Shown: positions 15,801-40,200 of the stretch, piece by piece | How the letters are laid out: the number at the start of each line of letters is the position of its first letter | Numbering within the stretch: position 1 is the stretch's first letter | Source: Pavona decussata | Lineage: Eukaryota | Reading direction: 5' to 3' | Assembly (NCBI GenBank): GCA_977016875.1 | Contig: CDRNST010000166.1 | Span: forward strand, 2,046,001-2,110,000 | Length of the DNA: 64,000 bases | Translations under genes and position numbers: made by a program | Notes under the pieces: model-generated | What the model was told of the DNA's origin: nothing | What the model saw: only the letters and a program-made list of their open reading frames with translations | Database searches by the model: none

Positions 15801-16185
15801 ACCAGTATTTTCCAGAGTAACTCCTTTTGGCCTCCAAGTTAAGTGTTTCTCCTGTGCCCACAGTCTTTCCATCCTTAATCCATGTTATATTTGGAGCAGG
15901 GTTTCCTGTAGCAAAACAATGAAATGTTGCCATTGTACCCTCTGTGAGCGTCTGATCAGCTGGTGTCGTCACTAAACTTGGGCCAACTAACAAGAAAAAC
16001 AAAAATCAGTTACTTAAGAAAGTAGATGTCCATCCAAACAGGGCCCAATAAACAGTAAGAACGCGACGACATGGCCACCTTATTTGTGTACCGTAAACTA
16101 AAGGTTTGTCAGCTTTCTTTATGGTAGTACGCCAGCATGTCTGCCACGCTACTGCCATTGGAACCTGTAGGAACTTACTTACATT

Positions 16186-16232
<47 letters not shown>

Positions 16233-19200
16233 CATCATCATCAATCCTTAGCACTCCCCGGAGAGCATAGGGCGTCCACCACTGCACGCCACCTTGCACG
16301 ATTCCTTGCTGTCAAATCCGCGATATATATTTGATCATATGTAACGTCGGTTTTCTGCTTAACAACATCATTGGAGGCAAGGCTAGTAAAAGAGTTACAC
16401 TTAAATTTTTTTAACTTACACTGAACATCAAGGGAAACACTTGTAATATTTGCATCGATTTCATTTTCCGCGAAACACCAGTATTTTCCAGAATCGTTTC
16501 GCTTGGCTTCCAATCTCAGGATTTCCTCTGTACCTACAGTCTCTCCATCTTTAATCCACGTTATGTTAGGTGTTGGGCTGCCTTTAGCGCTACAGTGGAA
16601 CGTGATTTGTTCACCTTCTCTGACTTTTTGATCAGTTGGTGTTCTTGAAAAACTGGGTGGAACTGCAAAAAAAAGGTAAATATTCAGTTACGTTTACTTA
16701 CTTTTTCAGAAGGAAATGACGTACTAAGGCATAATACCCTAACATTTGTTAGAGAACGTGATCACACAACAGATAAGTAAAGTTGGCACATGCATGGTAA
16801 CGTTCCTTAAGTTTGCAGAAATGATTAACATATCAAACTGTTCACGAGAATTGGAATTCTTCTTACAGCTGACATATGAATGTCAAATATACCTCGCTTA
16901 GTTTCAAGAAATCAAATCCAGCACACGTCTACTCTTCCAGCAGTTTGAGTCAAATTGGCTCGCATGCGTATACTGAAGACAATATGCACTCTTAGGATAT
17001 ACATTCCATGGTATACCGCTTTTTAAAAACACCGCATAACTAGCTATAACTAACCGCTAGTAAATATCTTACGGTTTTGCACTTACACTGCACATCGAGG
17101 ACGGCGCTAGCATTGCCAGCTGGTTGTAAACCATTGTCCGCTGAACACCAGTATTTTCCAGAATGATTCCTGAATGCTTGGAAGCTCAGTTCCTCTCCTT
17201 CCGCCACAGGCATGCCATCTTTACTCCATGTTATGTTTGGAGCTGGGTTGCCGATGACAGAACAGCGGAATGTTGCTATCGCGCCCTCAATAACTGTTTG
17301 TTGTGTTGGATGTATTGTCGAACTTGGCGGAACTGCAGCAAAAATCATAAAAGCAATTAAGAGAATTGAAAATCTTTTTACAATATCCATGATCGTATTT
17401 CAAGACAGATGGCTAACGTTTTTAAAAGTAGCCCTCGCAAATTGTTTGGCAAATATCATTGATAGCAATGTTTAGTTTTGTGGATCCTTACTTCCCGATA
17501 ATTTAAGTCAAATTGTTAGATAAGTATACGGTACGAAATCCATGATGATATCTTCAAATGCCCTGTGCAATTCTCCTCAAATGTATGACATCTTTTTACA
17601 ATATCCATGATCCTATTTCCAGACAGATAGCTAACATTTTTTGAAAGTAGCCCTTGCAAGTTGTTAGGCAAATATCACTGATAGCAAAGTTCAGTTCTGT
17701 GAATCCATACTTCTCGATAATTTAAGTCGAACTGTTAGATAAGTATACGGCACGAAATCCATGATGATATGTTCAAATGCCCTTTACAATTCTCCTCAAA
17801 TGTATGATGAAGTGTCAACATACAAAGGAGCCTATACCAACCCCCTTTTGGTCAATTACTGATTTCACCCCACCCTCCCGACCGGAAAAAAATATTAAAA
17901 TAAAGAAGAAGTTGCGACCAAGTCCACCAATCGTTTAAGCCACGGTGCTCTTTTAGGCGATCATTCAAATGATTAAAAATACAAAACTACTGCAACAGCG
18001 TCAAACTTGGCAGCTGCTTTTGTCTCGATTAGAAAGATGTTTGAGAAATTCAGGTATCGAAATCTTGCATTGCTTTGGGGAATGATGGTAATCCTAATCC
18101 TGTACCTATCTGTACTGTTGTTCACCTGATCACAGTTTAGATGCAAGAATATTAAAACTTACACTGCACATCAAGTTGGATACTAGCGTTGATATTCACA
18201 CCCAGTCCATTCCCTGCAGAACACCAATATTTTCCAGAATCATTTCTGTACGCCGTTAACCTGAATGTGTCCCCTGTGGCTATGGTTTTTCCTTGTCTGT
18301 ACCACGTTATCGTCGGAGTTGGGTTACCAGTGGCATCGCAATGGAATATGGTATCATCACCTTCTTTGACTGTTTGATCAACTGAAGTTGATGTAAAACT
18401 TGGTGGAACTGTCAAGCAAACAAACAAAAAAAAAATAGTTTTGGTCGTAGTTTATCAGGACCAACAATTTTAACTACGTCAGAGCCACGAAAGATTTAGA
18501 TAAGGAAGACCCAAGGAAGTTGCAATTTTTTCCTATTGTTTTCGCATTGGACTGATAGGCCAGGGATGTAATAGTTTTGTATTATTATAGGCGAAGCGTT
18601 AAAAACGTTTAATGCCTAAGTCACGTTGTCTGAGCACGCACACCGGATTAATCCTAAATAGGGATTTTAAATTTGGAATTCTCGTGACCAACAGCAGCAG
18701 CAACACAATATGAACGAAATGCCCAAATTAGCTTTAATAGGCTTATAGTAGACCAGTCACCCTATTGTCATTGAACCAATAAGGAGTCTACACTTCAGTA
18801 AGCGCCCCCCTTTACAGAGGACGTTTTACTGAAGATCAATGGAAAATTAAGGAAGGTATTGTGCAAACAACCCGGTGCAAAACTTAGATAATTAACATGA
18901 AGACTGCATATACCCTGCCGGATAATAGTTAGAGAATACCCATTGTGACCACAATGATTAGAAAAACCCGTAGACAAACTGTTTAACTCTTAATTATCTT
19001 AGCAGAAAACGAAATAATTTTAATTGGAAAACAACATAATTAGGCCGCATCAGAAAATTTCTCCCTTCTTTTGTCACGGCCCGTGGCATCGTTGCCTATC
19101 AGTGCATCGTTGCCTACCTGTCTTCGAAAACAAATTGTTACGTAAGCAAATATACACTCACATTGGACATTTAGATAAGCAATTGCTTTTACAGTTGCGT

Positions 19201-22200
19201 TAAAGCCATTATCAGCTAGACACCAATATCTTCCAGAGTCGTTCCTTTTCGTGACAAAGGAAAGTGTGTCTTCTTCACCCACAGTCTTTCCATCCTTTAT
19301 CCATCTGATCTTTGGAGTTGGGTTTCCAGTCGCATTACAATGAAATGTTGCCATGGCACCCTCGATCACGGTCTGGTTAGTAGGCTGCATGTCCAAACTT
19401 GCTGAATCTACAACAGTTAAAGAGTAGAATTACACATTATGGTTGGGATATGCATGTGGCTCTCCTTAGCAATATCTCTAAGACATAATGGGAGTCTTAC
19501 ATTTTTTACAAAAATTGAAAACGATTTTCTTTTAACTTTTGCTTGAATGTTTTATTTCAATGCGAGTTTTACGTGCCCTTCGACAACAAAATCCAGGATG
19601 GTAGATTACTACAGGCCAGCTTTGTAGAGCTGTACACGATGATATCATTCTAACTCACATCACATTTTATGGACACGTATCCAGTGTAAGGCATAATAGT
19701 TAATACTGAAAAGTCAATGGGGATAGCTTTCACTGTACAAAAGTTGTCGAACTTACATTGAACATCAAAGGAAACGCTAGTGTTGACAGTTTTGCCTATT
19801 CCATTATCCGCTGAACACCAGTATACTCCAGAGTGATCTTTCCTAGCTTCAAAGCTCAGTTTTTCTCCTGTAGCCACAGTATTGCCATCATTAGTCCAGG
19901 TTATGTTTGGCACAGGGTTACCAGTGGCATTACAGGTAAACGTAACCTGATCCATCTCAGTCACAGTCTGATCGAAAGGTGTGATAGTAAAACTTGGTGG
20001 AACTAGAAATTAAAATGTGAAAAGAAAGTTGGAAATCAGTTCGTTACGGGTGGCATGGCCAACGGTTGTCAATGTAACTTGTAACATGACTAATTGATTA
20101 AAAATCAATCAAAAGAGACTTGGATAACTCATGCATATTAATGCAGCGAGAAACTGTTTATGTTATAACACTGACAATACTGTTCAAGGGTAATGCAAAG
20201 AATAGTCGGCGAGTTGAGCCAACTTCGACAATTTTTTTTTTTTTCGCCGAATTTTCACAGAGGTGGGAAATGTATTGCAACAGTACGTTGCTCTCTCCCT
20301 TTTATGGGGACACAAACGTTAGTCTCATGATCACTCTGTACCAACAAGGGAAAACCTCCAACCACACATGACCGTCATCCGTAAAGTAACCATTGCCAAA
20401 TTAAAACAAGGTTGTCGTTCGTACTCAGTCATTCTCATGAGCCAAATTTACAATTAGCATGGCTTCGAAACCTCAGAGTTACTCTATTCCCGTCATAATC
20501 CATTTCCATTTCCCGAGCAAGCAGATGGGCTACAAAAACTTCACGTTTCGTAATGATTTCAATATGTGTTTACCCTTGTGGATAGAGACAAATCGATAAG
20601 AACATTGAAGAACTTCACCCTTTTGACAAGAAAAAGGATCAAACTGTACTCTTTACTTCATGTCAACGTAGCTGAGACCATAGTATTTGTGCATGGACAT
20701 ACATAAGCGAGTACTTTCCCATTCAGCGTCATACTTACACTGGACATCGAGGTAAGCACTAACGTTGGCCGTACCAATGAGACCATTATCTGCGATGCAC
20801 CAGTATTCTCCAGACCGATTCCTGACTGCGTCAAACGTTAATGTTTCTCCTTCAGCCACAACTGTGTTATCTTTGATCCATTTTATTTCTGGTTCAGGGT
20901 TACCAGACGCAGTGCAGTGAAAAGTTACTTTGCTGCCTTCAGTGATGGTCTGTTTACTTGGCGTTTCAGTCAGAGTTGGAGTAACTACATGAAATAAGAT
21001 ATAATAGTACATAAATGGAATGTCGTACAACGAGAAGAAGGTGTTACTGATACTCTCAAGACTACGTGGTTCGTCTCTATTTTCTGTAACATAAAGCAAC
21101 TTATCCCACTGCTTCATCATCTTGATCGAATGCTAGTCTGCGGCAATTTGTTCAGGTAATTTTCCGTACATTCGTTCCATGGTATCTATGAATGTACTTA
21201 AATTATTTGGAGATCAACAATACGGAGTAACCTTTGTTGTCCCACGAAATAACACAAGGTGATGACCAGCTTGAAGTCGTATTTCTTACGATCTTCCAAA
21301 GCCTGATAAAATGTCGACACTCTTGCAACTATATCACTGCGGTTCCTCTCATGTAAAGTTTCCGTTCAATCTTAAATGTTCATGAAATAAAAGAAATTTT
21401 CAATGTACTTACACTGCACATCAAGGAAAGCACTTGCACTGATAGCCAATCCCACTCCATTCTCAGCTGAACACCAGTATTCTCCAGATTGATTCCTATG
21501 TGTTTCAAAGTTCAGTGTGTCTCCAGTACCCACAGTCTTGCCATCTTTAGTCCAAGTTATATTTGGCTCAGGGTTACCAGCAGCAGTGCAGGTAAATGTA
21601 GTTTGCTCCTTCTCAGTCACGGTTTGATTTGAAGGTGTGCTGGTGAAGCTTGGTGGAACTAAAATGATAACATTAAATCACAATAAGAAATAATTGAATG
21701 CACGCAGATCGCGTGGGATATAAATTGTGCTCTGCTTTGAGCACTTGATAGCTCAGCTATCCAGTGCTTAAAGCAGAGCACTATAAAGTAGTTATAGCCA
21801 AGTACCAAGCCGCTAGAAAGTGCGCTATTGTTTTACTGATGAGGCCTAAGAAAGAGGAAACAACTGTCCATGGCTACCACTAACTGCGTGATTTGGCTGT
21901 GTGTATCCTTAAGGTGCTGGCCAACCGCAGAGCTATGCATTGTGACCTTTGCAGGCCTTGCGGATTAAATGGTCTTTTTTGTTTTTAAACTTACACAGTA
22001 CATTGCCAAAGTTCATTGGAGGATGTCTCTCTTATTCCATTTAGGAATCGTGCTCTTGTATCGGTCGTTTAATAATTCGAAGAATTTTTGACGAGACACG
22101 AAAGAAAACCGTGGCCGATGTTCAAACCCATACACGGTCGTCATACACGTCCTTCGGTAAACCTTGTCATGGAATGCTCAAGACAGCATAGACAATTGGC

Positions 22201-25200
22201 AGGGCACTAAATACACGGGTTTTGTTTGGCAAACCACTAAAAGATCCTATAACATCCAGTGTTAACAAATTCTTTTGCAGCAAAATACCTCAATGTTTTA
22301 AATGAAAGAATTGATATCTTGTTTTAATCAGATCATAGTCAACGGTGATTGAACCAGTAAGAACGTGTATAGACGACTGTAATTTTCTATGTGTATAAAA
22401 TGTTTCATATGTAAATGTGTACTCACATTGCACATTAAGATAAGCAATTGCTTTGACAGTTGCGTTAAAGCCATTATCCGCTAAACACCTGTATCTTCCA
22501 GAGTCGTTCCTTTTTGTGACAAAGGAAAATGTGTCTTCTTCACCCACAGTCTTTCCATCCTTTATCCATCTGATCTGTGGAGTTGGGTTACCGGTGGCAT
22601 TACAATGAAATGTTGCCATGGCACCCTCGATCACGGTCTGGTTAGTAGGCTGCATCTCCAAACTTGCTGAATCTACAACAGTTAAAGAGTAGAATTACAC
22701 ATTATGGTTGGAATATGCACATTATTCTCCTGAGCTATTTTTATTTAGAATATCTCTCAGACACATAATGGCAGTCACACTATTACATACATTTATTGGG
22801 GTGTTCCGTTTCAATACGAATTCTACGTTTCCTTCGACAATAAAAACCGGGATAGTAGATTACTACAGGCCAGAGTTGTAGAGCTGTACACTATGACGTA
22901 CTTCCACCACATCACATTTTATCGATACGTATCCAGCGTAAGGTCTAATAGTTTCAATGTATCTTAGTCAACAAACAGCCAACGGCGACAGAAGTTGTCA
23001 AACTTACACTGAACATCAAGGGAAGTGCTGGTGTTGATACGCTTGCCTATTCCGTTATCCGCTGAACACCAGTATACTCCAGAGCGATTTCTTCTAGCTT
23101 CAAAGCTGAGTGTTTCCCCTCTACCCACAGTTTTTCCATCTTTAATCCACGTTATGTTTGGCACAGGGTTACCAGTGGCATTGCAGGTAAACGTAATTTG
23201 ATCCTTCTCAGTCACAGTCTGATCGGAAGGTGTGATAGTAAAACTTGGTGGAACTAAAAATTAAAATGTGGAAAGAAAGTTTGAAATCAGTTCATACTGG
23301 ATGACATGGCCAACGGTTGGTCAATGTAGCTTTTACCATGACCAATTGATTAGAAATCAATCAATTAATGAGACTGAGAACTCATACACATACTTAGACT
23401 GTGTAGTTCCATAGACACTTTCCAAAACGTTTAAAAACTTATCTTTTCAAAATGTCTTTTAAATAGTGATTTTTGTATTAACCCCCCCCCCCCCCTTGTT
23501 TTTAGATAATTCTAGTTTTTAACTTGATATTCCAATCCTTTTTTTATCATTATTCATTGTAGAGCGCCATGAGCAAGTATTGATTTGGCCCTATATAAGT
23601 ATGTATTGTTATTGTTATTGTTATTGACATCTTAGTATCGAGTAAGCGATGATCAATGAATAGTGTCTGTTAAAATTTCCTCTTCCAGTTCGGTTGCCAT
23701 TGATAGCTGGTGTGGCATATATTGGATTTACGCACGCTGCACACTGTTTATCTTGTAACATTGCCAGTACTGTTCAAGTGCAATGAAAAGAAAATTCGAC
23801 GAGTTGAGCAAACTTCGACAAAATTGCTATTCACCAAAATTTCAAGGAGGTAGGAAAAGGCATTGCAATAGTTCGTTGCTCTTAACAAAATTTCGCGCGA
23901 TCTTTCGTATGCAGAAAACGATTTTTTTTTTACGGGGACACAGGGGTTCCTTTTACGGTGGGTAAAACCTCTGATCATATATGATCGTCAGCTTATTTGC
24001 CAAACTGACATAGGTTTTCGTTCGCACTCAACCATTCTCGTGAGCCAACTTTACTATTAGGATGGCTCCGAAACCTCAGATTTCACCCAAGTTACTCTAT
24101 TCTCAGAATCTCATCATAATTTTTTGCCCCTTTTCTTCTCCCGAGCCAGCCGAAGGGCTTCAAAACCTTCACTTTTTTTAATGATTTCAGTTACCCTAAT
24201 TTATGGTTAGATATAAACCAGCGGAAAAAATTAAACAACTTCATCCCTTCACAAGATAAAGGATCTAACTGTACTCTTTATTTTAAAAACGGAGTGAAAA
24301 GCAGAACATTTGTGCTTGCACATACACAAGCGAGTACTCTCCCATACAGCGCCATACTTACAATGCACACCGAGGTAAGCGCTAGCGTTGGCCGTGTCAT
24401 TGAGACCATTATCTGCGATACACCAGTATTCTCCAGATCGATTTCTAAGTGCGTCAAACGTTAATGTTTCTCCTTCACCCACAACTGTGTCATCTTTGAT
24501 CCACTTTATTTGTGGTACAGGGTTACCAGACGCGGTGCAGTGAAATGTTACACTCATGCCTTCAGTGATGGTCTGTTTACTTGGTGTTTCAGCCAGAGTT
24601 GGGGCAACTACAGAATTTAGGATGTAATAGTACAGCAATAACATATAGTATGAGTAGTAGGCCGAAACTAGCAATACAAAATGTCGCCAAGTCGTCGCTG
24701 ATATTCCTAACACTAGGTGGTTCATCTCTATTTTCTCGGTAACACTGAAAGCAAAGCGACGAACGCAACACTTTTACAACGAGAGAAAGGTCGGCCTGCG
24801 GTGCAAAACGTCGCTGATAACTTCAATATTAGGTGGTTCGTCGCTAATTTCTGTAACATATTGAACGGGATGCTAGTCAATCGCAAAGTTCATATTAAGT
24901 TAATTTTCCCTAAACTCGTTCCCCGGTACCTATGAACGTACTTGAATTGTTTGGAGATCAACAACGGCGAGTAACCTTGTTTCTCCCAAGAAATAACACG
25001 CTGTGATGATCAGCTTGAAGACCCACTTCTTATCACCTACCAAAGTCTCATAGAAAGTAAACGCCCCCACCACTATACCACTCCGGTTCATTGCATGCAA
25101 AGTTTCCGTTCAATCTAAACTATTCAAAAAACAAAAGTAAAAGAAATTTTCATTGCACTTACACTGCACATCAAGGTAAGCACTTGCGTTGATAGCCAAT

Positions 25201-28200
25201 CCCACTCCATTCTCAGCTGAACACCAGTATTCTCCATATTGATTCCTATGCGTTTCCAAGGTTAGTGTCTGTCCAGTTCCCACAGTCTTCCCGTCTTTAA
25301 TCCAGGTAATATTTGGCGCAGGGTTACCAGCAGCGGTGCAGGTAAATGTAGTTTGTTCCTCCTCTGTCACGGCCTGATTGAAAGGTGTGTTGGTAAAACT
25401 TGGTGGAACTAAAACGATAACATAAAATAACAATAAGACATTGAAGACATTGTACTCGTAGGACATACATTTCATGGTTTAACACTCTGATTTAAGCATT
25501 TCACAGCTATAGCCAAAAACGTAACAGGTAGAAAATCTGCTGTTGTGACACGGGGCGTAGTGTAGTTGTTTATCAGTTAATAGTCCAAGGTCGTTGAACC
25601 AATAGGATTCGTCTGTATACATCTGTAACTGTCTATAAATGCAAATTATTACATGTGTTTTTTTACTCACATTTCACATTAAGATAAGCTATAGCTTTAA
25701 CAGTTGCGTTAAAGCCGTTATCCGCTAAACACCAATATCTTCCAGAGTCGTTCCTTTTCGTGACAAAGGAAATTGCGTCTTCTTCACCCACAGTCTTTCC
25801 ATCCTTTATCCATCTGATCTTCGGAGTTGGGTTACCGGTAGCATTGCAGTGAAATGTTGCCATGGCACCCTCGATGACAGTCTGGTTAGTGGGCTGCATG
25901 TCCAAACTTGCTGAATCTACAACAGATGAAGAGTAGAATCTGAAAATAATTATAATTGGAATATGCAGCTTTTATTGAGAATGTCCCGCACAAATATCAT
26001 GGGAATCAGATATTTTTGACATACATTTACAATTGACTTCTTCTTCTTCTTCTTCTTTTTTTTTTTTTTTTTTTTTTTTTTCATTTTTTGCTGAATTGTT
26101 TCGCTTCAATGCTCCTTCTATGCTTCGATATCCAAATCCGGGATAGGTGATTACTACAAACCGATTTTGTATAGCTAAACATTATGATAACATTGTTCCT
26201 AACATCAAACTTTAATGGACACGTATCCCAGGTATAAGAATTAACACTTTCAATTTCTTTTAAGTCAACACTGAATAGTTAACGATGACAGCTGTCAGTG
26301 TGCAGAGGTTTTTAAACTTACACTGAACATCAAGGGAAACGCTTGTGTTGATACTCTTGCCTATTCCGTTATCCGCGGAACACCAGTATTTTCCGGAGTT
26401 ACTTCGTCTTGCTTCAAAGCTCAGTGTATTTCCTGTAGCCTCAGTCCTGCCATCTTTAATCCAGGTTATGTTTGGCACAGGGTTACCAGCAGCAGAGCAG
26501 TTGAAAGTAATTTGATCCTTCTCAGTCACAGTCTGATCGGATGGTGTGATAGTAAAACTTGGTGGAACTTGAAATGAAAACATGAAAAGAACGTTTTAAA
26601 TGGGTACATAGTGCCTCTCCGGTTGGCCAACATAACGCCTCAGATACTAATTCAGCAGAAAGCAAACCATGAGAATTCGTTTTCAAACCTCATATCATTT
26701 ATAACGGTCAGCTGTAAAGCGACTGTTACTAAATTAAGTTTGTCATTCCTATTCAATTATTCTTTGTAAATGGCATGACTTCGAAAACTCTGATCTAACA
26801 CAAGTTAGTCTATTCCCATGCATCTTTATTGAGTTTGTTTTTTCTTTACCCGAGCCTGCGAAATGGGTACGATCAGTTGAGGTTTATTACATATTCCAAT
26901 GTATATTTACCCTTCTGGAATTAAAGCGACAAAACTATTGAACAACTTTTTATCCCATTCACACTTGTAGTCTTTATTTTACATCAAAAAGAGTGAAAAC
27001 CATTTGCACTGGCACATACGTTATCGATACTTCCCCATCCCGCTACTCCGTGTATCGGAAGGAAAATCTACAGCTTCATACTTACAGTGCACATCGAGGT
27101 AGGCGCTACCATTGACCGTGACATTGACACCATTATCTGCGATACACCAGTATTCTCCAGATCGATTCCTGAATGCATCAAACGTTAATGTTTTTCCTTG
27201 TCCCACAACTGTGTCATCTTTGATCCATTTTATTTCTGGTACAGGGTTACCAAATGCAGTGCAGTGAAAAGTTACTTTGCTGTCTTCAGTGACGGTCTGT
27301 TTACTTGGTATTTCAGTCAAAGTTGGGGCAACTGCAGAATATAAGTTATAAAAGTATAGCAATAACATATGGTATGAGTAGAAGGCCGAAAATAGCTGCG
27401 CAAAATGTCACCAAGTCGTCACTGATATTCCTAACACTAGGTGGTTCATCTCTATTTTCTGTAACATCTTAAGAAAAGCGACTAAGGCATTCCGTTTTCA
27501 CCCTGAACAGGTTAGTAGTCCACGGTAAGATTCTCAGCATTTTGTTAGGCTGATTTTCGGAACAGTCGTTCCGCGATCAAATCTTTCTTGTTGGACAAAA
27601 AATAACACGATGTGGTGAGCAATTTACCTGAAATACATTCCTCACTTCCTTCCAAAGATTCACAAAGTTCTACGCCCTTATCACTTCAAAACTTCGTCTA
27701 CTTACAAGTAAAATTCCGAATCATCAAACAAATTATAAAGTTTAAGTAGACGAAATTTTCACTGAACTTACACTGAACATCTAGGTAAGCACTTGCGTTG
27801 ATAGCCAATCCCACTCCATTTTCAGCTGAACACCAGTATTCTCCAGATTGATTCCTATGTGTTTCCAAGCTCAGTGTGTCTCCAGTACCCACAGCCTTCC
27901 CATCTTTAGTCCAGGTAATATTTGGCGCAGGGTTACCAGCAGCAGTGCAGGTAAATGTAGTTTGCTCCTTCTCAGTAACGGTCTGATTTGAAGGTGTGCT
28001 GGTGAAACTTGGTGGAACTAAAATGATAACATTAAATCACAATAAGAAATCGAAGACATACTCGTAGGACATACATTTCATGGTTTAGCAGTCTGATTTA
28101 AGAACTACATAGCAATAGGCAGATGTGTAACCGGTAGAAAATATGCTGTTGTGACACAGGACGTAGTATAGTTTTTTATCATTTAATAGTCAAGGGTCAT

Positions 28201-31200
28201 AACATTCGACTGTAACAGTCTATAAATACAAATTATTACATGTGATTCTTTTAACTCACATTTCACATTAAGATAAGCAATTGCTTTGACAGTTGCGTTA
28301 AAGCCATTATCAGCTTGACACCAATATCTTCCAGAGCCGTTCCTTTTTGTGATAAAGGAAAGTGTGTCTTCTTCACCCACAGTCTTTCCATCCTTTATCC
28401 ATCTGATCTTTGGAGTTGGGTTACCGCTGGCATTACAATGAAATGTTGCCATGGCACCCTCGATGACAGTCTGGTTAGTAGGCTGCTTGTCGAAACTTGC
28501 TGAATCTACAACAATTAAAGATTAGAATTACAAATTTTGGTTGAAATGTGCACGTGAGGCAGAAGGATTGATACCACTCTCTTCTCGACTTTCCTTAGCA
28601 AAGTTTATACAGGATATACCTCACAGACAATATGGCAATGATATTTTTTTAAGATCATCGAGAACACTGCGCAAGCTTTTAAACTTCTGTTGGGTTTTTC
28701 GTTTCGTTTAATGCCAAGTTTAAGTTTCGTTCAACAATGAAAATCAGTAAAGCGAATTTGTACAGACAAACTTTGCAAAGCTGCACCTAAGAACGCTATT
28801 CTACCTTACTTCACATTTTTATTTGTCAAGTGTATAAGACCCAACGACCGGCGGCAGCTGTAAATGTGGAGAGGTTGTTCAAACTTACACTGAACATCAA
28901 GGAAAGCACTAGAGTTTATACTCTTGTCTACTCCATTTTCCGCTGAACACCAGTAAGCTCCAGAGCGATTTCTACTAGCTTCAAAGCTCAGTGTTTCTCC
29001 TTTAGACACAGTCTTCCCATCTTTAATCCAGGTTATGTTTGGCACAGGATTACCAGTGGCATTGCAGGTAAACGTAATTTGATCCCTCTCAGTTACGGTC
29101 AGATCGGAAGGTGTACTAATAAAACTTGGTGGAACTAGAATTGACAATATGAGGAGAAAGGTAGAAATGAGTGCGTAGTGGATGAAATGTCCAACGGATG
29201 GTCAATAAAACGTCTACAAACACTAATTGATAAGAAATCATTCAAGTAATATATCAAACACGAGACACAGTGTTTCATCACATATCAAACACCGAGAAGA
29301 GAGTTGAAAATACGACGCGCAGCGGAGTATTCTTGACGAACTTCGAGGTTTTTGATGTTGTGATGAAACACTGTGCCGAGTGTTTGATATAACTTCTCAA
29401 ACAAACTGATTTTGAAGGAGAAATTAAGGACGCAAAAACGAGGAGTTTTTCATCAGATATCCAAACACGTCACGGTGCATGATTTCCTTTGTCTTTGGCT
29501 TTTGAATTATTAATGAGTTTGAGAGGGAGACTTGGAATACTCATACATACTGATATCTTGATATCAAGAAAGCGCTGATCATTAGGCTCCTTTCGAAATA
29601 TTAAAATTCAACTTGATATCGAGGTCCAGAGGACACAAACAACAGAAATGACTTAACTTGATTATCGTATTTCCTTTGTTTGTGTCCTGTTGGCCTCATT
29701 GTCAAGTTGAATTTTAATATATCAAAAAGAGCATATTGACAGCGTAAACAAGAATTTCCTTTCTCAGATCTCATAGCATAAATGGGATTTACGCACGCTG
29801 AAACTCTTTATATTTTAAGTCTTATAACATTGTCAGTACGGTGCAAGTGTTATGCTAAGACATTTCGGTGAGTTAAGCAAATGTCGTAAAACGACTGTTG
29901 CAAAAGTTCGTTGCTTTCTACAAAATTCCCCGCAATGTTTCGTACGCAGTGTATGAAATTTTCTTTTTATGGTGATACAAAGGTTGGGCTGCACCGACAT
30001 TAAGCGAAAAATTCGTTTCGAAACCTTCAAGGATATATTGCTATAAGCTCTAAACAACCAATCCAAAATTGACGCAAATATCTCGTACACAAGTATTCAA
30101 TGATGCTCGGTCAGCAAACGCTAGACCTAGTTTGACTTCAAAAACTCAGATTTAACACAAATTAGCATATTATCACGTTGATTATTTGCTTTTCCTTTTC
30201 CGGAATAACTACAAAAACTGACTTTTCCGAAGTACTCCAGTATGTATTTACCGGCCCAAGTAACAACGTTATAAGAATATTGAAAAACTCGATTTTCATC
30301 TCTTTCACAAAAATAAAGTAAAATGATCAAACGGTAGTCTCTTTATTTGATACGAAATGGATTGAAAACCATATCATTTCATCCAGAATCTCCATTTTTT
30401 TGTAACGAAACCTACAGCGCCAGTCATACTTACAATGGACATCAAGGTAAGCGCTAGCGTTGGCCGTGTCATTGAGACCATTATCTGCGATGCACCAGTA
30501 TTCTCCAGACCGATTCCTGAGAGCGTGAAACGTTAATGTTTCTCCTTCACCAACAACTGCGTCATCTTTGACCCATTTTATTTCTGGTGCAGGGTTACTA
30601 GACGCGGTGCAGTGAAAAGTTACTTTGCTGCCTTCAGTGATGGTCTGTTTACTTGGCGATTCAGTCAGAGTTGGAGCAACTACATGATGTAAGGTGTAAA
30701 AGTACGTAAAAGACCTATCGTACAAAGAGGAAAAGGCCGAGACCTGCAGTGCAAAGCGTCAATGATATTCGGAAGGTTAGGTTTTTCCTCTCTATTTTCG
30801 TAACATAAAGCGAATAAGATCACTGCTTTTTCACCATGACCAGGATACAAAGCCCATCGTAAGGCTCTGATTATTTTGTTAAGCTAATCTTCCGTACATT
30901 GGTTTCATCAAACCTATGAATGCACTTACACTGTTCGGGGATCCACAACGTGGAGCAACTTTTCTTGACCCAAGAAAGAAAACAATGGGATGACCAGCTT
31001 GGAACAACATTTTTACGACCTTTCGAAGCCTAATTATACTACAGACACCCTCGTCACAACAGCACTACGTCGACTTGCATGCAAACTTGGCATTGTATCG
31101 TAACTATACATTAAGTAAAAAAAGAGTTTTTAATGTACTTACACTGTACATCTAGGTAAGCACTTGCGTTGATAACCAATCCAACTCCATTTTCAGCTGA

Positions 31201-34200
31201 ACACAAGTATTCTCCAGATTTATTCCTATGTGTTTCGAGGCTCAGTGTGTCTCCAGAACCCACATTCTTCCCGTCTTTAATCCAAGTAATATTTGGCGCA
31301 GGGTTACCAGTAGCGGTGCAGGTAAAAGTGGTTTGCTCCTTTTCAATCAGGGTCTGATTTGAAGGTGTGCTGGTGAAACCTGGTGGGACTACAAGGTTAA
31401 AATAAAATGATAGTAACTCTGAACTCGTGGTATACACATTTCATACTATAGGGCTGTGCTTTATGCACTGCAGAAGATATGCTGTGGTTTACACTGCACA
31501 GCGAGTGCTAGCTTTACTAGGTAGGATTTCTAGCATTAGCAGCTGGTTGTAAACCATTGCAGCAATACTTTTGAGAACAATTGATGTATGTTTGAAAGCT
31601 CAGTTTCTTTCCTTTTTCACATTATAGCAATAATAGTGTTGCTTGAGCGCATTTTCTTTCTAAATATTCGAATGCGCTTGTATGATTAAAAGTAAACTTA
31701 ACAAACAGTATCCACAGCAAGCGACCATTACTAGAAATCTATACATTAAACTAAATTATTCATTCTTCACGGATCTTAAGTATTTCCACTGGGTAACTGT
31801 CACTAACATCAGATAATTTAAATCCTCCACTCCCGTCAACAGCGATTGAACCAATGACTTTCGTCTATATTCCACTGCAACTATCTAGAAATACAAATAA
31901 ATACACCTGTAAATATCTACTCACATTTTACATTGAGATAAGCAATGGCTTTGACGGTTGCATTAAAGCCATTATCAGCTAAACACCAATATCTTCCAGA
32001 GTCGTTCCTTTTTGTGACAATGGAAAGTGTGTCTTTTTCACCCACAGTCTTTCCATCCTTTACCCATCTGATCTTTGGAGTTGGGTTACCGGTAGCATTG
32101 CAGTGAAATATTGCCATGGCACCCTCTATGACAGTCTGGTTAGTGGGCTGCATGTCCAAACTTGCCGAGTCTACAACAGTTAAAGATGACGGTCAAAAAA
32201 TTGCGGTTAGAATATACACGTGGAAAAGAACGACTAATATTATCATTCCAACCCATCGACTCCCTTTAGAGACGTTTATTCAGTATTTCCGTCATACACA
32301 TCACGCCAATCATATGTTTGTTACTTGCTTTAAATTTTTACTTTTTTTGTTTGACACATCGGTTCAATGCCTTGTGTAGCTTTGCCTCGAAAGCAAAATC
32401 CAGGAAAGTGGATTTCAGCAAGCAGCCCTTTTACAGCTGTGAGTAACAATGTCATTCCACCTCACATCACATTTGTATGTACGCCTATTCAGTGTTTAAA
32501 ACTTTATGGTTTCAACGTTCCTTTAGACAGTCAACGGTGACAGCTGTCAACGTGCAGAGGCTTACAAACTTACACTGAACATCAAGGAAAACGCGGGTGT
32601 TGATACTCTTGTCTATTCCATTTTCTGCTGAACACCAGTATACTCCGGAGTTATTTTTCCTAGCTTCAAAGCTCAGTGTTTCTCCTATACCCACAGTCTT
32701 GCCATCTTTACTCCAGGTTATGTTTGGAACGGGGTTACCAGTGGCAGTGCAATTGAACGTAATTTGATCCTTCTCAGTCACGGTAAGATCGGAAGGTGTG
32801 ATAGTAAAACTTGGTGGAACTAGAAATTATAATATGAAAAGAAGTTAGAAATGAGTACGGAGTGAATGAAATGGCCCTTTGTTGATGCATATAACGTCTG
32901 CGGTAACTGATTCCTCAGATATCGGCAATCCACGAGACTTGGATAACTCATGTCAGAACTAAGCGAAAAGATCTTCAGAATTAGCATTACTCAGAGTTAA
33001 AGGAATTTAGCCCATTCTTTTCATAATTGGTTGGCTGCTTTTTTTTTTCCGATGCTGTGAAATAACTAAAAAAATGTCAATTTTCTGAAATATTTCAGTA
33101 CTTTATTTACCTTTCTAGGGACGTCAACAACTCTTCATCATGTTCACAACCAAAACAAATGAAACTGTATTCTTTATTTCATATCAAACGGATTAAAAAC
33201 AATAACATTTGAGCTTGCACATACAGAGGCACATCCCCCCCCCCTCCCCCCGAGCTTCTCCATATCTTGTAACACAACCTTAACGTCCTACTTACACTGG
33301 ACATCAAGGTACGTGCTAGCGTTGGCCGTGTCATTGAGACCATTATCTGCGATGCACCAGTATTCTCCAGATCGATTCCTGAGTGCGTCAAACGTTAATG
33401 TTTCTCCTCCACCCACAACTATGTCATCTTTGATCCATTTTATTTCTGGTATAGGGTTACCAGACGCAGTGCAGTGAAATGTAACACTGATGCCTTCAGT
33501 GATGGTCTGTTTATTTGACGTTTCAGTCAGAGTTGGGGCAACTGCAGAATAATAAGATTGAAAAGTACAGCAATGACATCGTAGAAGGAGGAAAGGGCCG
33601 AGACCTGCAGTGCAAAGCACCACTTATATTCTGAAGGTTAGGTGGTTCATCCCTACTTTCTGTAACATAGCGGGAATAAGACCATTGCCTTTTCACTCTG
33701 ATCCCAGATGCAAGTCCATCACTAGGTTCTTATTATTTTGTACGGAGGATTATTTGAAATAATCTTCCGTACATTAGTTTCATGGTACCTATGAATGCAC
33801 TTCTGTCCTCAATTGTTCAGAGATCAACAACATGGAGCAGCTTTTCTTGACCCAATAAATAAAACAGTGCGATGACCAGAGTGGAACCAAATTTTTTACG
33901 ACCTACCCAAGCCTAATTAAACGACAGACACCCTCTCATCACAACAGCACTGCGTATGCTCGCATGCAAACTTTCCATTGTATCGTAACTATATATAAAG
34001 TAAAAGAGAGTTTACACGGCACTTACGTATACACTGCACATCTAGGTAAGCACTTGCGTTGATAGCCAATCCCACTCCATTCTCAGCTGAACACCAGTAT
34101 TCTCCAGATTGATTCTTGCGTGTTTCGAGAGTCAGTGTGTCTCCTGTACCCACAGTCTTCCCGTCTTTAATCCAGGTAATATTTGGCGCAGGGTTACCAG

Positions 34201-37200
34201 CAGCGTTGCAGGTAAATGTAGTTTTCTCCTTCTCTGTCACGGTCTGATTTGAAGGTGTGTTGGTAAAACTTGGTGGAACTAAAAAGATAAGATGACAGTG
34301 ACAAAAATTAATGGCGTCCTAAATTCGTGTGATATACATTTTATTCTATACAGCTAAGGTCTAAGCGATTCATAGCTAGCTTTAGCTAAGTTTGAAACCA
34401 ATAAAAGGAATATGCTACGGTTTGCACTGAATATCGAGAGCTAATATTGGCAAGTGATTGTTATCTTAATCGCCTGAGAAGACAACTAAATAATTTAATT
34501 AAAAAACAAGATTATTTGGCCGCTTGATCAGAGATTCTGCTTCCCTGTGACACAGCGTTTGAGAAAGGTGCTTATGAGTTAGTATTCAACGGTGATTGAA
34601 CCAATAAGATTTAAGTATGTTCCACTGCACCTATCTAGGAATGCAAATAATTACAGGCGTAAATATATACTCACATTTTACATTCAGGTAAGCAATTGCT
34701 TTGACAGTTGCGTTAAAGCCATTATCAGCTAAACACCAATATCTTCCAGAGTCGTTCTTTTTTGTGACAAAGGAAAGTGCGTCTTCTTCACCCACAGTCT
34801 TTCCATCCTTTATCCATCTGATCTTTGGTGTTGGGTTACCGGTGGCATTGCAGTGAAATGTTGCCATGGCACCCTCTATGACAGTCTGGTTAGTGGGGTA
34901 CATATCCAAACTGGCTGAATCTGCAACAATTAAAAATTAGAATTAGAAATTTCAGTTGGATAAAGCGCGTGGGAAAGAACTACTTACATGACTCCCACTC
35001 TTCGACTCTCTTTAGGGAGATTTATTCAGTATATCCCTGAGACATATGTTTTGCCAATGATATATTTTTTATATATATTAAGAGCGTTTCTAAATTTGTA
35101 CTGTTTTTTTTTTTATTTGTTTTAGTTTTTACGTTTCGGTTCAATGCCTTTTGTACGTTTGCTTCGAGAACCAAATTCCAGGATACTGGATTTCTGCAGG
35201 TGGGCTTTGCTCAGCTGTACATAAGATAACGATTTTAATCTACCCCTAATCACATTTCTCTGGGTACCTATCCACTGTTTACGGCTTTATAGTTTCAAGG
35301 AATCCTTAGTCAGCATACAGCAGCGGCGACAGCTGTCAATGTGCAAAGGCTTACAAACTTACGCTGAACATCTAGGGAAACGCTAGTGTTGATACTTTTG
35401 TCTATTCCATTATCCGCTGAACACCAGTATACTCCAGAGCGATTTCTTCTAGCTTCAAAGCTTAGTGTTTCTTCTCTACCCACAGTCTTGCCATCTTTAA
35501 TCCAGGTTATGTTTGGCGCAGGGTTACCAGTGGCAGTGCAAGTCAACGTAATTTGATCCTTCTCTGGGACAGTCTGATCGGAAGGTGTGATAGTAACAGT
35601 TGGCGGAACTAGGAATGAAAATATGAAACAAAAGTAAGACATTAGTGCACAGTGGACTAAATGCCCCTCCGTTGGCGAACATAACATCTACAATTACTAA
35701 GTCATCGAAAGCAATCAATGCAATTTGGATAACTCATATTGGCGCTAAAAGAAACTTTCGTTTCCAGACTTTCAATCATATATGACCGACAGCTATAAAG
35801 CGGCCATTGTCGATTGTTGTTCGTTGTCCACTATTCTTCAGAATTAGGATGACTTCGAGATATAAGATTGAACACAATTTAGCTGTGTCTTCATTGTTTG
35901 CGCTTTTTCTTTTCACGAGCCAGCGGAATGAATAAAAAAACTTCCACTAGGCATTCACTCTTCTCTGATCAAATTAAAGCGAGAAAACCATTGAAGAACG
36001 CTTCGTCCTTTCCAGAACAACAAAATCAGACTGTACTCTTTATTTTATATCAAACTGAATGAAACTGATAATGTTAGGCCGGTACGTACACAAGTGAGTA
36101 TCTCCCATCCCTTGTGTCTATGTCTTGGAACAAAACCTACAGCGTCATACTTACAGTGGACATCAAGGTAGGCGCTTGCGTTGGCCGTGTCATTGAGACC
36201 ATTATCTGCCATGCACCAGTATTCTCCAGATCGATTCCTGAGAGCGTCAAACGTTAGTGTTTCTCCTTCACCCACAACTACTTCATCTTTGGTCCATTTT
36301 ATTTGTGGTACAGGGTTACCAGACGCAGTGCAAAGAAATCTCACCTTGCTGCCTTCAGTGATGGTCTGTTTACGTGGTGTTTCAGTCAGAGTTGGAGCAA
36401 CTACAGGATATAAGGTATAACAGTACATCAAGATCATATCGGGCAAGGAGGAAAACGCCGAGATCTGCAGTGCAAAGTGTCACTGATATTCTCAAGACTG
36501 CGTGGTTCAGCTTTATTTTGTAACATAAAGGGACTAAGACTATTATGTTTTGACCCCGAACGGGATGTTAGTCCATCGCAAGGTGCTCAGCTTTTTGATA
36601 ATCTAATTTTCAGAACATTATTTGCACAATCTATAATATGGAATAAGGTTTGTTGCTGGACAAGAAATAGCACAACGTAGTAAAGAGCTTAACTGAAACA
36701 CCTTCTGTGTGTCCTTCGAAGGCACGATAAAAAGTCGCATGCCATCATCACAAAATAAATGCGTTGATTCGTGAGGGAGCTTTTGGTGACATCAAAAATG
36801 ATCATGAAGTAAAAACGAATAACTTTTCACTGTACTTACACTGCACATCAAGGTAAGCACTTGCACTGATAGCCAATCCCACTCCATTTTCAGCTGAACA
36901 CAGGTATTCTCCAGATTGATTCCTATGTGATTCGAGGCACAGTTTGTCCCCAGAAGCCACAGGAATCCCATCTTTAGTCCAGGTTATGTTTGGCGCAGGG
37001 TTACCAGCAGCGGCGCAGGTAAATGTGGTTAGCTCCTTCTCAGTCACGGTTTGATTTAAAGGTGTCCTAGTAAAACTTGGTGGGACTAAAATGATAACAA
37101 AAGATCACACTAAGACGTTTGCGGGTTAAATACCCCTCTGTTTTTAAAAGCATTTCCTCAGAAACTTAACTTATAACACGTTACTCAGTGTAGCGATGTC

Positions 37201-40200
37201 AAATGATAATAGTGTGAAAATAAAAATCGATTAATACCAGCCAATGGACTGTTAATTGATAGTAACAACGAAAATTCCATTTACAAAATCATTTGCATGG
37301 TGTCGTTGCTATCGATTGTCTCGAAGCTTATACGTGGGCGTATTTTATGGTTAATGGAAAAACTTTTCTGTTGGCACTCGTAGCTTTTTTGTGTCACTAT
37401 TAGCTCCGAAATTCAATCATCTTCAAGGAGAGACTCGTGGATAGCGCCTCTCCTGCTCGATTTTGGTAAGCCTTTCCGAGAAAGTCGAAAACCTACTATC
37501 TTGAAAATATAGCATGGATGAAAACTAAACCGATTTCCATCTTTTTTCGGCCAAACTAGGAAAATTCTGCGGTGTAGTTTTTAGGCACACGTAGCCTATA
37601 CCCATCATTTAAAGCTTACATAAAGCAGTGTTGTCTCCTTATTCCTATCCCGGACTGGGGAGACGAAGAAAAATATCAGCACCTTTATCGTTTTTGAGAG
37701 GACAGTTGAACTTGTGTCACGAAGGTTAGAAAATTTCACATCCCCCTTCCTTCTTTTTCCCTCCCCCTTTTTTTTTTTCGTCATCATCATCGTTTATTTG
37801 CCTTAGTAAAAGAAGAAAACATTTAAATTACAAGTTAAGGTAATAGCGAGAAGACCTCATGAAACCACCAGGCTTATAAGAGAGGACACCTCGGCTGTCA
37901 TTAATAAATATAAAATATGGTTCTGCGTAAGTGTGGCTTGGTCAATTCATGATTTCACAAATAAAAACTCCAACATTTTCTCCTTAAGGGTGAGAAAAAC
38001 TAGATGAATAAGTAATGTATATTGGGGTAGAGTTCCAGATTTTGGGACCTTGGTAAAGGATTGTAAATTGCTACAGATTTGTGCGACAAGAATGCGATCG
38101 ATAGCGGTTGGCTATTCTGTTACCATAATTATGCACTTGGCTACTTGTTAAAACAAATTCAGAATTTTTAGATCTACTTTTTTAACATAAGGTGGATATT
38201 CCGCCAATAAGACTTATAAAACACTAAAGCTACTAGGATGATACGATGGCGTTAATGGCAAACGTTCAAATGCTGTTAATTGCTAACTCCCTTAAGCACC
38301 TTTGACTGTAGTAGATTTATCACAAATTGAAATAACAATCCGAGCTTCAAGCTACGTTTATGCATGGTATAGTTGATAGATTTAAGGCCACTGCTTGGTA
38401 ATCTTCGAAAAATTACATTTGTTTAAGCCCTCATCTTTTTCTACATGTGCTGAATGGGTAATCGAGGGAAAGATGTCCGATCAAAACAGTTATTTGAAGT
38501 CAAATTACGGTTAGTGGACAACCTTACGAAAGCCTTTTTAAGTGATCGGTGGCTTTCGATCTGTTTTTTATAGCCATATGTCCGTAGGTGTACTGTTTGT
38601 CGAATCAGTTGGTTTGTCTTTCGTTTTGAAGTCGTTTGTCAGATGTAGGTAGTTGCATCCCTTCAGTGGTGTTTCTTCTTAGTAAGTAAAGCCGATTTCT
38701 GGAGTTAATAGTAGTCAAAAAAGACATCCCTTCACACTTACACTGTACATCAAGGTATGAACCAGCCTTTATTGATTTGCCCAATCCATTGTCTGCCCAA
38801 CACCAATATTCACCAGTTTCATTTCTGGATGCCTTTAATCTCAGAGTGATTTCGGTGCCAACAGTTTTTCCATCTTTTACCCATTTTATCTCTGGCATAG
38901 GATTTCCAGTGGCGGTGCAATGTAATGTGGTTTCTTCAAACTCGATCAAAGTCTGGTTGGCTGGTTCCTTTGTAAAACTTGGTGGATCTGAAATTTAGAG
39001 GAACGGTTATTGAGGTGGAGCATCTGGTTAAAAGACATTCGTTACGAAAACGAAGTGGTGTATTCTTTTGCACAATGTGGATAAACAGTTATCCCAAAGA
39101 TGTTTCCTTTGGCGTCCGCAACGAAAAGTGTTGACGTCATATTACGTGGTAATTACGTCACGATTGCCAGGAAAGCGCTAATTGAGCTTGAAAGATAAAA
39201 GTTATTACGAGAAAAGTAATTTTTGTTCATTTAAAAAAAGGGATTTTCCATTTTCTGGAAAATCGCCAATGAAAAATTTCTTACCTTGTTAAGCCAATAG
39301 ACACTAACTGACCACATCAAATTGTTCACAGGAAAAATTCTAAAAACCTGGTAAAATTTCATGGTGTTTGCTCCAGTATTAAAAAAGTTATTCACGTTCA
39401 AAGTCCCTGAGGGCAGAACCACCCCCCCCCCCCCCTTTACCCTGGTCTAGATAGGGCTAATATTCAACTGAAGATGTATAGATCAAGCTGTTTTTGTAAA
39501 ACTTAGTTTTTAAGATGCCTTCAAATGCCGTATTAAACGTTAATAAGTTAGTCTCAGTTGGCATACGCAACTGCTGGAAAAATGCTTTGGAGTCATTCAA
39601 AGAACCACGCGTCTTTTACTTACACTGTACATTGAGGTACGCAATCGAGTTGACGGTGGCGTTCAATCCATTACTTGCTAAGCACCAGTACTTTCCAGAA
39701 TGATTCCTCAAAGCAGTAAAGCTCAGTTCGCTTCCTGTCTGCAAAGTCGTCCCATCCTTGAACCACATTATCTGTGGCACAGGATTGCCAGTGGCAGAAC
39801 AATGGAAGGTTACGTGATCGGTTTCGTTGACGGTCTGGTTTACTGCTTTTGAGACGAGACTTGGCAAATCTAGAGGAAAAATTCACATGATTAGTTTTAA
39901 GACCCTCGCTTTGACAAGAAAACATTGAGAAAAATTTGTCATAAATGGCGCCTGTTTTACAATTCTTCTCATGTGTTAACCTTGCAAAAAGTGGACTTGT
40001 ATTCATTGACACTGAGACAAGGTTACCACACTTACAGAGCACATTGAGGTAAGCGCTCGCATTGACTGTTGAATCGATCCCATTCTCCGCTGAGCACCAG
40101 TACCTTCCCGACTGATTCCTAAATGCTGCAAAGTTCAGTGTCTCTCCAGTTCCCACCATCCGCCCATCTTTAGTCCATGTTATCTCTGGGGTTGGGTTTC

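Follow-up and report, generated by a model that had tools for sequence, protein, structure and literature searches.

A tandem array of immunoglobulin exons with an amplified four-exon unit in a putative L1CAM-family gene of the coral Pavona decussata

Super-repeats of 7 and 11 domains are a feature of the titin A-band, and both TTN and NEB contain triplicated exon blocks, whose copy number varies in NEB. The locus described here, found in a window of 64,000 nucleotides from the coral Pavona decussata (the whole stretch of DNA that was analysed), shares with titin and nebulin the encoding of one domain per symmetric exon, the clustering of exons by their position in the unit and not by neighbourhood, the multiplication of whole blocks of exons and introns, a probably serial mode of inclusion and a copy number that can vary. 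It differs from them in the host, which appears to be a cnidarian transmembrane L1-type adhesion receptor and not an intracellular muscle filament, and in the unit, which consists of four immunoglobulin (Ig) domains, each with 2-4 N-glycosylation sequons. Long tandem arrays of duplicated Ig exons in a neural-type receptor gene of the Ig superfamily (IgSF) are also found in arthropod Dscam1; there, however, the exons are mutually exclusive and depend on docking/selector RNA pairing, whereas here neighbours are joined in RNA and the pairing signal was not found.

Members of the L1CAM family (L1, NrCAM, neurofascin, CHL1 and neuroglian) have been reported in Cnidaria (PMC10084454). As in this family, the window holds N-terminal Ig exons, fibronectin type III (fn3) exons, three of whose open frames pass Pfam (31.9-32.7 bits, cut-off 25) with a fourth just under at 22.5 bits, and an exon for a cytoplasmic Bravo_FIGEY tail above the Pfam cut-off. 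While the canonical L1CAM has six Ig domains, the exons matching the Ig1 to Ig6 positions are accompanied here by 36 extra Ig exons (at least 44 in relatives), inserted between Ig4/5 and Ig5b. A second difference from the family is that the ankyrin-binding tyrosine is not conserved, since the tail motif reads FIGDL and not FIGQY. A PDB sequence search with the tail exon gave no match, and one with an Ig exon led to generic neural IgCAMs. The array agrees with the flanking Ig exons in strand and phase. To judge from its exons, the array is placed in what is probably a coral gene of the L1CAM (neuroglian/neurofascin) family, with the N-terminal Ig exons on one side and the Ig5b-Ig6-fn3-tail part on the other; strand, phase and conserved synteny suggest that array and L1 exons belong to one mRNA, in which all 36 array exons would be included together.

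A "neuroglian-like" protein of the coral skeletal organic matrix, listed as 1280 aa, has been described in Acropora millepora (B8VIW9; PMC3748352, PMC4043741). Like the product expected here, it is a stony-coral L1-type IgSF/fn3 transmembrane protein, the two being likened by description and not by sequence, but its 1280 aa correspond to the canonical length. Should the Acropora protein prove orthologous, there are isoforms or orthologues that lack the array (PMC4043741). The literature search did not turn up any L1-type gene described as having an exon array of this kind. No annotated protein with this array was found among 1.84 billion cluster representatives, so that the gene sets now available for corals probably lack it or contain it in fragments. 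The profile search of these representatives matched only generic multi-Ig proteins, the best full-length matches being cnidarian hemicentin-like proteins. Montipora foliosa XP_068685500.1 (hemicentin-1-like) likewise has a series of tens of I-set-like Ig domains, each with its own exon, but it was rejected as the counterpart: the best foreign domain in the profile search scores 70 bits compared with 123-151 for the window exons, its architecture is Ig+EGF+SEA+TM, and it corresponds to a different locus of the same genome (contig C217).

The array consists of 36 exons on the minus strand (Table 1), all in phase 1-1 and 246 nt long except e31 (243 nt); an open frame bounded by an AG acceptor and a GT donor is present in 36/36, and the splice sites are uniformly strong. 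Each exon encodes a single small Ig domain. Six of them, compared with Pfam, match Ig_3 at 51-64 bits and I-set at 43-50 bits; the Cys...Trp...Tyr-x-Cys core of I-set/Ig_3 is present, with C23, W35 and C62 invariant in 36/36 exons, and N-x-S/T sequons number 114 across the array (2-4 per domain). There are 0 stops in any array exon and within-type dN/dS is 0.13-0.38 at dS 0.24-0.30: the super-repeat copies are under purifying selection. Four exon types succeed one another in the order Q, P, D, M six times across exons 5-28 (24/36 array exons), in units of 2807, 2890, 3371, 2609, 3750 and 3250 nt (units 1-6). This strict order and its six copies, which a sequence-only reading had recognised with a period of about 2.5-3.8 kb, are borne out by the exon boundaries and the type clades described below, and the ends then assigned to the super-repeat, the first base of exon 5 at 37085 and the last base of exon 28 at 19162 on the minus strand, are exact exon boundaries. 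N runs occur in the window at 1009-1149 and 43094-43236.

Table 1. Coordinates of the array, its super-repeat units and the flanking exons, in positions of the window
Feature	Position	Strand	Details
N-terminal Ig exons of the putative same gene	45810..52005	-	Open frames 52005-51553, 49862-49479, 48572-48243, 45995-45810
Ig5a exon	44653..44937	-	285 nt, phase 1-1, weak donor GTTAGA; paralogue of Ig5b
Array exons e1-e4	38742..40879	-	246 nt each, upstream of super-repeat; splice sites and frames; e1 matches Ig_3/I-set (Pfam); classes B,B,A,A in the tree, alternation absent
Unit 1	34675..37085	-	e5(Q) 37085-36840, e6(P) 36400-36155, e7(D) 35608-35363, e8(M) 34920-34675; splice sites, frames, tree; RNA joints e5>e6, e7>e8
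Unit 2	31925..34278	-	e9(Q) 34278-34033, e10(P) 33541-33296, e11(D) 32819-32574, e12(M) 32170-31925; RNA joints e8>e9, e9>e10, e10>e11 (allele check), e11>e12 (loose end)
Unit 3	28260..31388	-	e13(Q) 31388-31143, e14(P) 30679-30434, e15(D) 29134-28889, e16(M) 28505-28260; splice sites, frames, tree
Unit 4	25671..28017	-	e17(Q), e18(P), e19(D), e20(M); three units here in genome G2 against one
Unit 5	22427..25408	-	e21(Q), e22(P), e23(D), e24(M)
Unit 6	19162..21658	-	e25(Q), e26(P), e27(D), e28(M)
Array exons e29-e36	12262..18408	-	Older, mutually diverged (~62% nt identity); strict two-class alternation
Conserved intron block, example	36438..36520	-	~40-160 nt upstream of P exons; repeat families D12, D15
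Further copies of the intron block	33578-33660, 30717-30799, 21046-21127	-	
Ig5b exon	10491..10772	-	282 nt, phase 1-1, immediately downstream of array; conserved in many corals
Ig6-like exon (open frame holding it)	9483..9824	-	
fn3 exons	4735..8975	-	Open frames 8975-8616, 6965-6606, 6290-6000, 5166-4735; Pfam fn3
Cytoplasmic-tail exon, Bravo_FIGEY	629..889	-	PF13882, 36.5 bits (cut-off 23.8)

In the nucleotide exon tree the exons cluster by position type with a support of 99-100, each type forming one clade (Q 99/96, P 100/100, D 100/98, M 100/100); this clustering is matched by 0/500 label shuffles and the clades hold across five genomes. The introns are homologous too, as had been claimed: identity within a class is 65-68%, compared with 46 +/- 3% when unrelated introns are paired, and BLAST of the array introns gave within-class E-values down to 1e-101 and no between-class matches. 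The least conserved intron of the super-repeat is the one between units, after M. The conserved intron blocks upstream of the P exons have no RNA coverage in the depth table. From e5 to e36, odd and even exons also fall into two alternating classes, which are separated by one branch in a tree of the four type representatives and e29-e36 (86/91 for DNA, 78/72 for protein; matched by at most 5 of 500 shuffles) and by a branch with 79/91 in the 36-exon tree, so that the two-class alternation is real and moderately supported. With regard to the origin of the unit, Q and D are sisters (99/95) with 75.6% nt identity, whereas P and M are 61.5% identical, about the array background of 62.5%, and in a distant coral P and M correspond to two different exons, which lie five exons apart. 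Consequently, a single duplication of a Q-P pair cannot explain D-M and a simple origin Q-P -> D-M was rejected; of the succession first proposed, from dimer to tetramer to sixfold amplification, the amplification of a four-exon unit over an older alternation stands and the step from dimer to tetramer does not.

The probable reading of the locus is that of a tandem Ig-exon array in an L1CAM-family gene, in which the Q-P-D-M block has been multiplied and whose exons are spliced serially into a long rod. An old array with exons alternating between two sequence classes would have gained the four-exon block, later multiplied by unequal homologous recombination to give the six copies of this genome, the eight of a close relative and other numbers elsewhere. 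The copies would have been kept by purifying selection and spliced consecutively, for which reason the domains are expected in series in the mature protein: an Ig rod about 36 domains long (perhaps ~150 nm), with heavy N-glycosylation, inserted in an otherwise ordinary L1-type ectodomain and possibly acting as a spacer or in length tuning.

The comparison with other coral genomes indicates that the number of units is variable. Genome G2, which is 95-99% identical to the genome of the window and has alleles in common with RNA samples bearing the label of the same organism, has eight units against six, a difference that could partly be due to assembly error in either genome; G3 is identical to G2 over 39.5 kb, and the two were therefore counted as one genome. 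A half unit (D-M) is present in G4, while G6 is missing e29-e30 and carries recent, near-identical units. The distant coral has 19-21 array exons, without the four-exon amplification, so that the exon numbers across corals are 19-21, 36 and at least 44; it keeps array, Ig5b, Ig6 and fn3 in the same order, with exons only ~55-60% identical. The indels observed between genomes within e5-e36 are always multiples of two exons and the alternation is retained in the distant coral across 12 consecutive exons (F08-F19), which would also be expected if the Q-P-D-M order and the alternation had been kept by selection, with neighbouring domains forming two specific kinds of interface in a zig-zag or paired rod. 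This proposal also fits the type-specific residues, which are concentrated in two places, one at the start of the domain ahead of the first Cys and the other following the second Cys. We regard this explanation, in essence that of the sequence-only reading, as possible, though doubtful, since in a periodic array unequal crossing-over, driven by the homology of same-type sequences, produces whole-period indels automatically and without selection, and the order may thus not reflect domain pairing; moreover, neighbours of the same class occur in e1-e4 (B,B,A,A), in E06-E07 of G5 (B,B) and in the irregular F03-F07 of the distant coral.

Four RNA runs, from four studies, cover the array exons and not the introns. 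The contigs concerned (Logan, 50-210 nt, e5-e12 only) show local joints, not whole molecules or inclusion levels. Wherever a joint has a side of 31 or more, it links neighbours (e5>e6, e7>e8, e8>e9, e9>e10); with e10>e11, there are five distinct neighbour junctions, seen in as many as three runs, and e11>e12 comes from a loose end only. An apparent four-exon skip, e6>e11, in two runs, was discarded because the 22 nt before the joint are those at the end of e10 in the G2 allele, which makes it an ordinary e10>e11 joint. A Dscam-like choice of one of 36 exons is refuted by the well-supported joints, all between neighbouring exons, and is without docking/selector complementarity; the serial inclusion that the sequence-only reading had preferred to it agrees with the consecutive joints in e5-e12 and with the alternation in the unamplified distant coral. 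More generally, the array could be a generator of diversity, through cassette or mutually exclusive exons, skipping of 2- or 4-exon blocks or skipping of the whole array. Every skip would indeed be in frame, owing to the phase 1-1 symmetry of all array exons and to a junction codon that is Phe, Tyr or His for any pair, and a neuroglian-like protein of canonical length (1280 aa) has been reported in another coral (PMC4043741). The skipping of blocks of two or four exons, also suggested earlier, comes down to one weak joint, e8>e11 (side 29, one run): it could be a two-exon skip preserving the class alternation, but it could also come from an individual with M next to D in its DNA, as in G4. The uniformly strong splice sites and the flanking introns, neither of which has sequence complementary to three or more array introns (exact 12-mers, at most 2/35), also argue against diversity generation, which we consider improbable. 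Word searches for the array-end junctions retrieved genomic open frames only, through which the related genomes were reached, and no spliced RNA-derived protein.

It is very unlikely that the array lies outside the L1-type protein, whether as a transcription unit of its own, separate or nested, or as a relic in decay, for although the RNA joints seen are all inside e5-e12, with none spanning from the array to the flanking Ig exons, and Ig5a has a weak donor and lies within a 4.5-kb segment missing from G2, 36/36 exons remain intact, dN/dS lies well under 1, array exons are transcribed and spliced, the flanking exons agree in strand and phase, and the placement before Ig5b/Ig6/fn3 is preserved in the distant coral.

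In the serially spliced L1-type rod that we favour, serial splicing together with the variation in unit number between related corals would give the receptor an unusually long, length-variable outer part. In an animal whose nervous system is simple, a neural adhesion receptor of the classic six-Ig type could in this way have become a giant molecule with a rod, through the amplification of an exon block, and the corals offer a natural series (19-21, 36 and at least 44 exons, half units, recent duplicates) for the growth and shrinkage of periodic exon arrays. More speculatively, and with little likelihood for the whole, unit number may be fast-evolving and possibly polymorphic within species, giving individuals L1-type ectodomains that differ in steps of ~330 residues; such length alleles, perhaps with two-exon block skipping, might tune the distance between cells or between cell and skeleton, or aid tissue compatibility. 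Elsewhere in the same genome, an Ig-EGF-SEA gene carries an expanded Ig exon array with super-repeats of its own, and array expansion in surface receptors may thus be general in this coral lineage.

The array consists of 36 exons (e1-e36, numbered 5' to 3' along the gene) located between 40879 and 12262 by scanning for motifs and then searching for splice sites, on the minus strand, to which the coding signal is confined throughout. Every exon has an AG acceptor 22 codons ahead of its first cysteine and a GT donor 19 codons past the second, is 246 nt long (243 nt in e31), is in phase 1-1 and is free of stop codons. Each codes for a single Ig domain of 82 residues (Pfam Ig_3, 51-64 bits; I-set, 43-50 bits) in which Cys23, Trp35 and Cys62 are invariant (36/36); the codons at the junctions of neighbouring exons specify Phe at 24, Tyr at 10 and His at 1, and N-x-S/T sequons total 114, about 3.2 per domain. 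The donor of e9 is weak (GTATAC, 34027-34033) and a consensus GTAAGT lies 6 nt further on; RNA from run X6 uses position 34033. Two simple repeats were also observed: a 219-nt tandem duplication just upstream of e30 (17372-17807) and a (CAT)n microsatellite of about 21 copies in the e31-e32 intron (16182-16243).

Exons e5 to e28 repeat four types, Q, P, D and M, named for their position in a four-exon unit, six times, each unit measuring 2.6-3.75 kb. The limits of this super-repeat had been placed by the sequence-only reading at 19162-37085, and these are exact, exon 28 ending at 19162 and exon 5 starting at 37085. When the 36 exons are placed in a maximum-likelihood tree, each type forms a single clade (Q 99/96, P 100/100, D 100/98, M 100/100), a clustering by position that none of 500 label shuffles comes close to, and exon identity inside one type is 86-92%. 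Furthermore, introns of the same class are 65-68% identical vs 46 +/- 3% for unrelated pairs, with BLAST E-values down to 1e-101 within classes and no BLAST matches across them; the least conserved is the intron following M, between units. The strict sixfold order and the intron homology proposed from the sequence alone are therefore borne out, and the result named in advance as counting against them, an exon tree without clustering by position, was not obtained. The copies are under purifying selection, with dN/dS of 0.30 (Q), 0.38 (P), 0.37 (D) and 0.13 (M) at dS 0.24-0.30; every copy is intact even though unused copies of this age could have decayed. About 40-160 nt upstream of P exons lies an intron block (30717-30799, 33578-33660, 36438-36520, 21046-21127) that is 77-84% conserved between units, better than the remaining intron, and has no RNA coverage; it is a candidate branch-point region or splicing enhancer.

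The older alternation of two domain classes from e5 to e36, likewise claimed earlier, holds with moderate support. In trees built from one representative per type plus e29-e36, a single branch separates odd from even exons (86/91 for DNA, 78/72 for protein; reached by at most 5 of 500 shuffles), and the split recurs in the 36-exon tree (79/91). Classes are less tidy in a tree of 144 exons from five genomes, whose backbone is weak, where class A ('PPSF') falls together with a Q/D/e31 group, opposite class B (including M) and a P group; along the gene, A or Q/D alternates with B or P from e5 to e36, and e1-e4 show no alternation (B, B, A, A). The simple form of the proposed 'dimer, then tetramer' origin fails. 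Q groups with D as its sister (99/95, 75.6% identity), but identity between P and M is just 61.5%, equal to the array background (62.5%); a P+M clade was not recovered, nor was it rejected (p-AU 0.35). Moreover, P and M have separate sisters in a distant coral (F09 and F15, five exons apart), none of whose exons falls inside the Q+D clade of the 144-exon tree. The most economical history, as read from these trees, would be that an old alternating array was already present, that a four-exon block then arose whose two odd members are more recently related to one another, and that this block was amplified. Preserved order requires no selection on domain pairing, since same-type recombination in a periodic array adds or removes whole periods only and same-class neighbours are tolerated at the 5' end; pairing between neighbouring domains, suggested earlier as the cause, is a possible but speculative one.

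Downstream of the array, and sharing its strand and phase, lie an Ig exon (Ig5b), a further Ig exon, four fn3-bearing open frames and a tail exon, in which the tyrosine of the ankyrin motif is absent (FIGDL). From its sequence, the gene has the architecture of a receptor of L1CAM/neuroglian type, the array standing among its Ig domains. The array probably belongs to the L1-type mRNA, because it matches the flanking exons in strand and phase and keeps a conserved position. An Ig domain is roughly 4 nm long. A protein holding all array domains serially would be a glycosylated rod, its 36 domains adding about 150 nm and pushing the adhesive head outward from the membrane. A 4.5-kb segment (41007-45482) containing Ig5a (44937-44653, minus strand, weak donor GTTAGA), an upstream paralogue 42% identical to Ig5b, as well as 39-nt and 143-nt tandem repeats (41409-41755, 43346-44477) and a masked N run, is missing in the close relative G2; as Ig5a is present at 95% identity in another relative (G5), G2 has probably lost an in-frame exon.

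Features of the host gene, arrays in related corals (G2, G4-G6) and a distant coral (F), and exon joints in RNA (side, length in letters of the shorter side)
Feature	Position or accession	Strand	Description
Upstream Ig exons	about 52005, 49862, 48572, 45995, 44937	minus	
Ig5b	10772-10491	minus	Ig exon directly after array
Further Ig exon	about 9824-9483	minus	downstream of Ig5b
fn3-bearing open frames (n=4)		minus	between Ig exons and tail exon
Cytoplasmic-domain exon		minus	Bravo_FIGEY (L1-family), 36.5 bits, cut-off 23.8
G2	ERZ25073751		e1-e4, eight Q-P-D-M units, e29-e35 (retrieved sequence ends there)
G4	ERZ26692694		order as in window, one D-M half unit, ~17.7-kb virus-like gene insertion in array intron
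G5	ERZ26692669, ctg61222		Ig5a, eight extra 5' exons, e2-e4, then Q-P-D-M units
G6	ERZ26692669, ctg60994		at least five units, three near-identical; last M directly to e31 (without e29-e30)
F	ERZ25067879		19-21 exons, no amplified unit; last 12 strictly alternate; then Ig5b, Ig6, fn3
Joint e5>e6			439-nt intron skipped, one SNP; side at least 31
Joint e7>e8			442-nt intron skipped; side at least 31
Joint e8>e9			396-nt intron skipped; side at least 31
Joint e9>e10			491-nt intron skipped; side at least 31
Joint e11>e12			loose end bearing e11 end
Joint 'e6>e11'			sides 20 and 27
Joint e8>e11			side 29, one run, depth 5

Related genomes were found by a word search with one P exon, which led to open frames on long ENA contigs whose surroundings were annotated as for the window. 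G2 and the window are collinear, with 94.7-98.8% identity, and G2 has two extra units at the position of unit 4 (assembly G3, identical to G2 over 39.5 kb, is not independent). The differences seen between genomes within e5-e36 are all multiples of two exons; at the 5' end, the extra exons of G5 stand in the place of e1. Exons of the distant coral are only about 55-60% identical to those of the window. These comparisons indicate that the array and its place within the gene are old, that the Q-P-D-M amplification is younger and lineage-restricted, and that unit number is still in flux. Identity between window and G2 orthologues is uneven, from 100% (e4, e13, e14) down to 90.7% (e10), which suggests gene conversion between units, e10 deriving from another P exon; the neighbours of e10 (33296-33541) are 98-100% identical to their orthologues. 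The G4 insertion (L007:12241-20399 and L008:1-3809, ctg14946) has open frames matching Pox_VLTF3, Bro-N, rve+Chromo, HNH, Endonuclease_7 and phospholipase A2-like proteins, a comparable gene set lies in opposite orientation at L007:1-6269, and the insertion has the appearance of virus-like DNA or of a large integrated element. In the distant coral, one haplotig (L010:1-2338) carries a reverse-transcriptase (RVT_1) open frame at the array's 5' edge, where the other (L009) has two further array exons.

Logan contigs from four RNA runs of four studies were mapped to 31140-37090 (e5-e13). Depth is confined to exons, wholly intronic bins being empty in all runs, and joints whose shorter side has at least 31 letters connect neighbours only. 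Each 12-mer in the two flanking introns has its complement in at most two introns of the array. These results refute a strict one-of-36 choice, and inclusion is serial across e5-e12, as the sequence-only reading had favoured. The contigs (50-210 nt) are too short to give the content of single 36-exon molecules or the frequency of block skipping. An apparent four-exon skip, 'e6>e11', was rejected: the 22 nt before the joint are the e10 end of G2, and this is thus an ordinary e10>e11 joint of another allele. The e8>e11 joint may reflect skipping of two exons, or the DNA of an individual in which M stands beside D, as in G4. Among the variants, 11 of 32 are common to G2 and the RNA runs labelled as the window's organism.

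Of the systems known, the array most resembles in kind the titin/nebulin super-repeat, which likewise has duplicated exon blocks, and the nearest family is L1CAM, on record in cnidarians (PMC10084454); a 1280-aa 'neuroglian-like' skeletal-matrix protein is known from Acropora (PMC3748352, PMC4043741). Dscam-type arrays are alike in the genome but unlike in RNA. The gene is best described as one for an L1-family receptor that carries a serial super-repeat of Ig exons. A search of 1.84 billion representative proteins with a profile built from the 36 exons retrieved generic multi-Ig proteins only; the window's own exons score 123-151 bits, the best foreign domain 70 bits. The top match, a 'hemicentin-1-like' protein of Montipora foliosa, has an Ig+EGF+SEA+TM architecture and corresponds to another locus of the genome. 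A second, larger array of at least 49 Ig exons lies on the plus strand at G000:C217:406902-468400 (loci L013-L021), with a three-exon unit repeated three times at a 2.47-kb period (450148-456570) and units of two to three exons repeated about seven times (427755-447890); it appears orthologous to that Montipora protein (XP_068685500.1). Finally, two isolated 246-nt array-type exons (107-117 bits), about 900 nt apart at G000:C77:1280373-1281529 (loci L017, L022), may represent a small paralogue or a partial copy dispersed to another contig.
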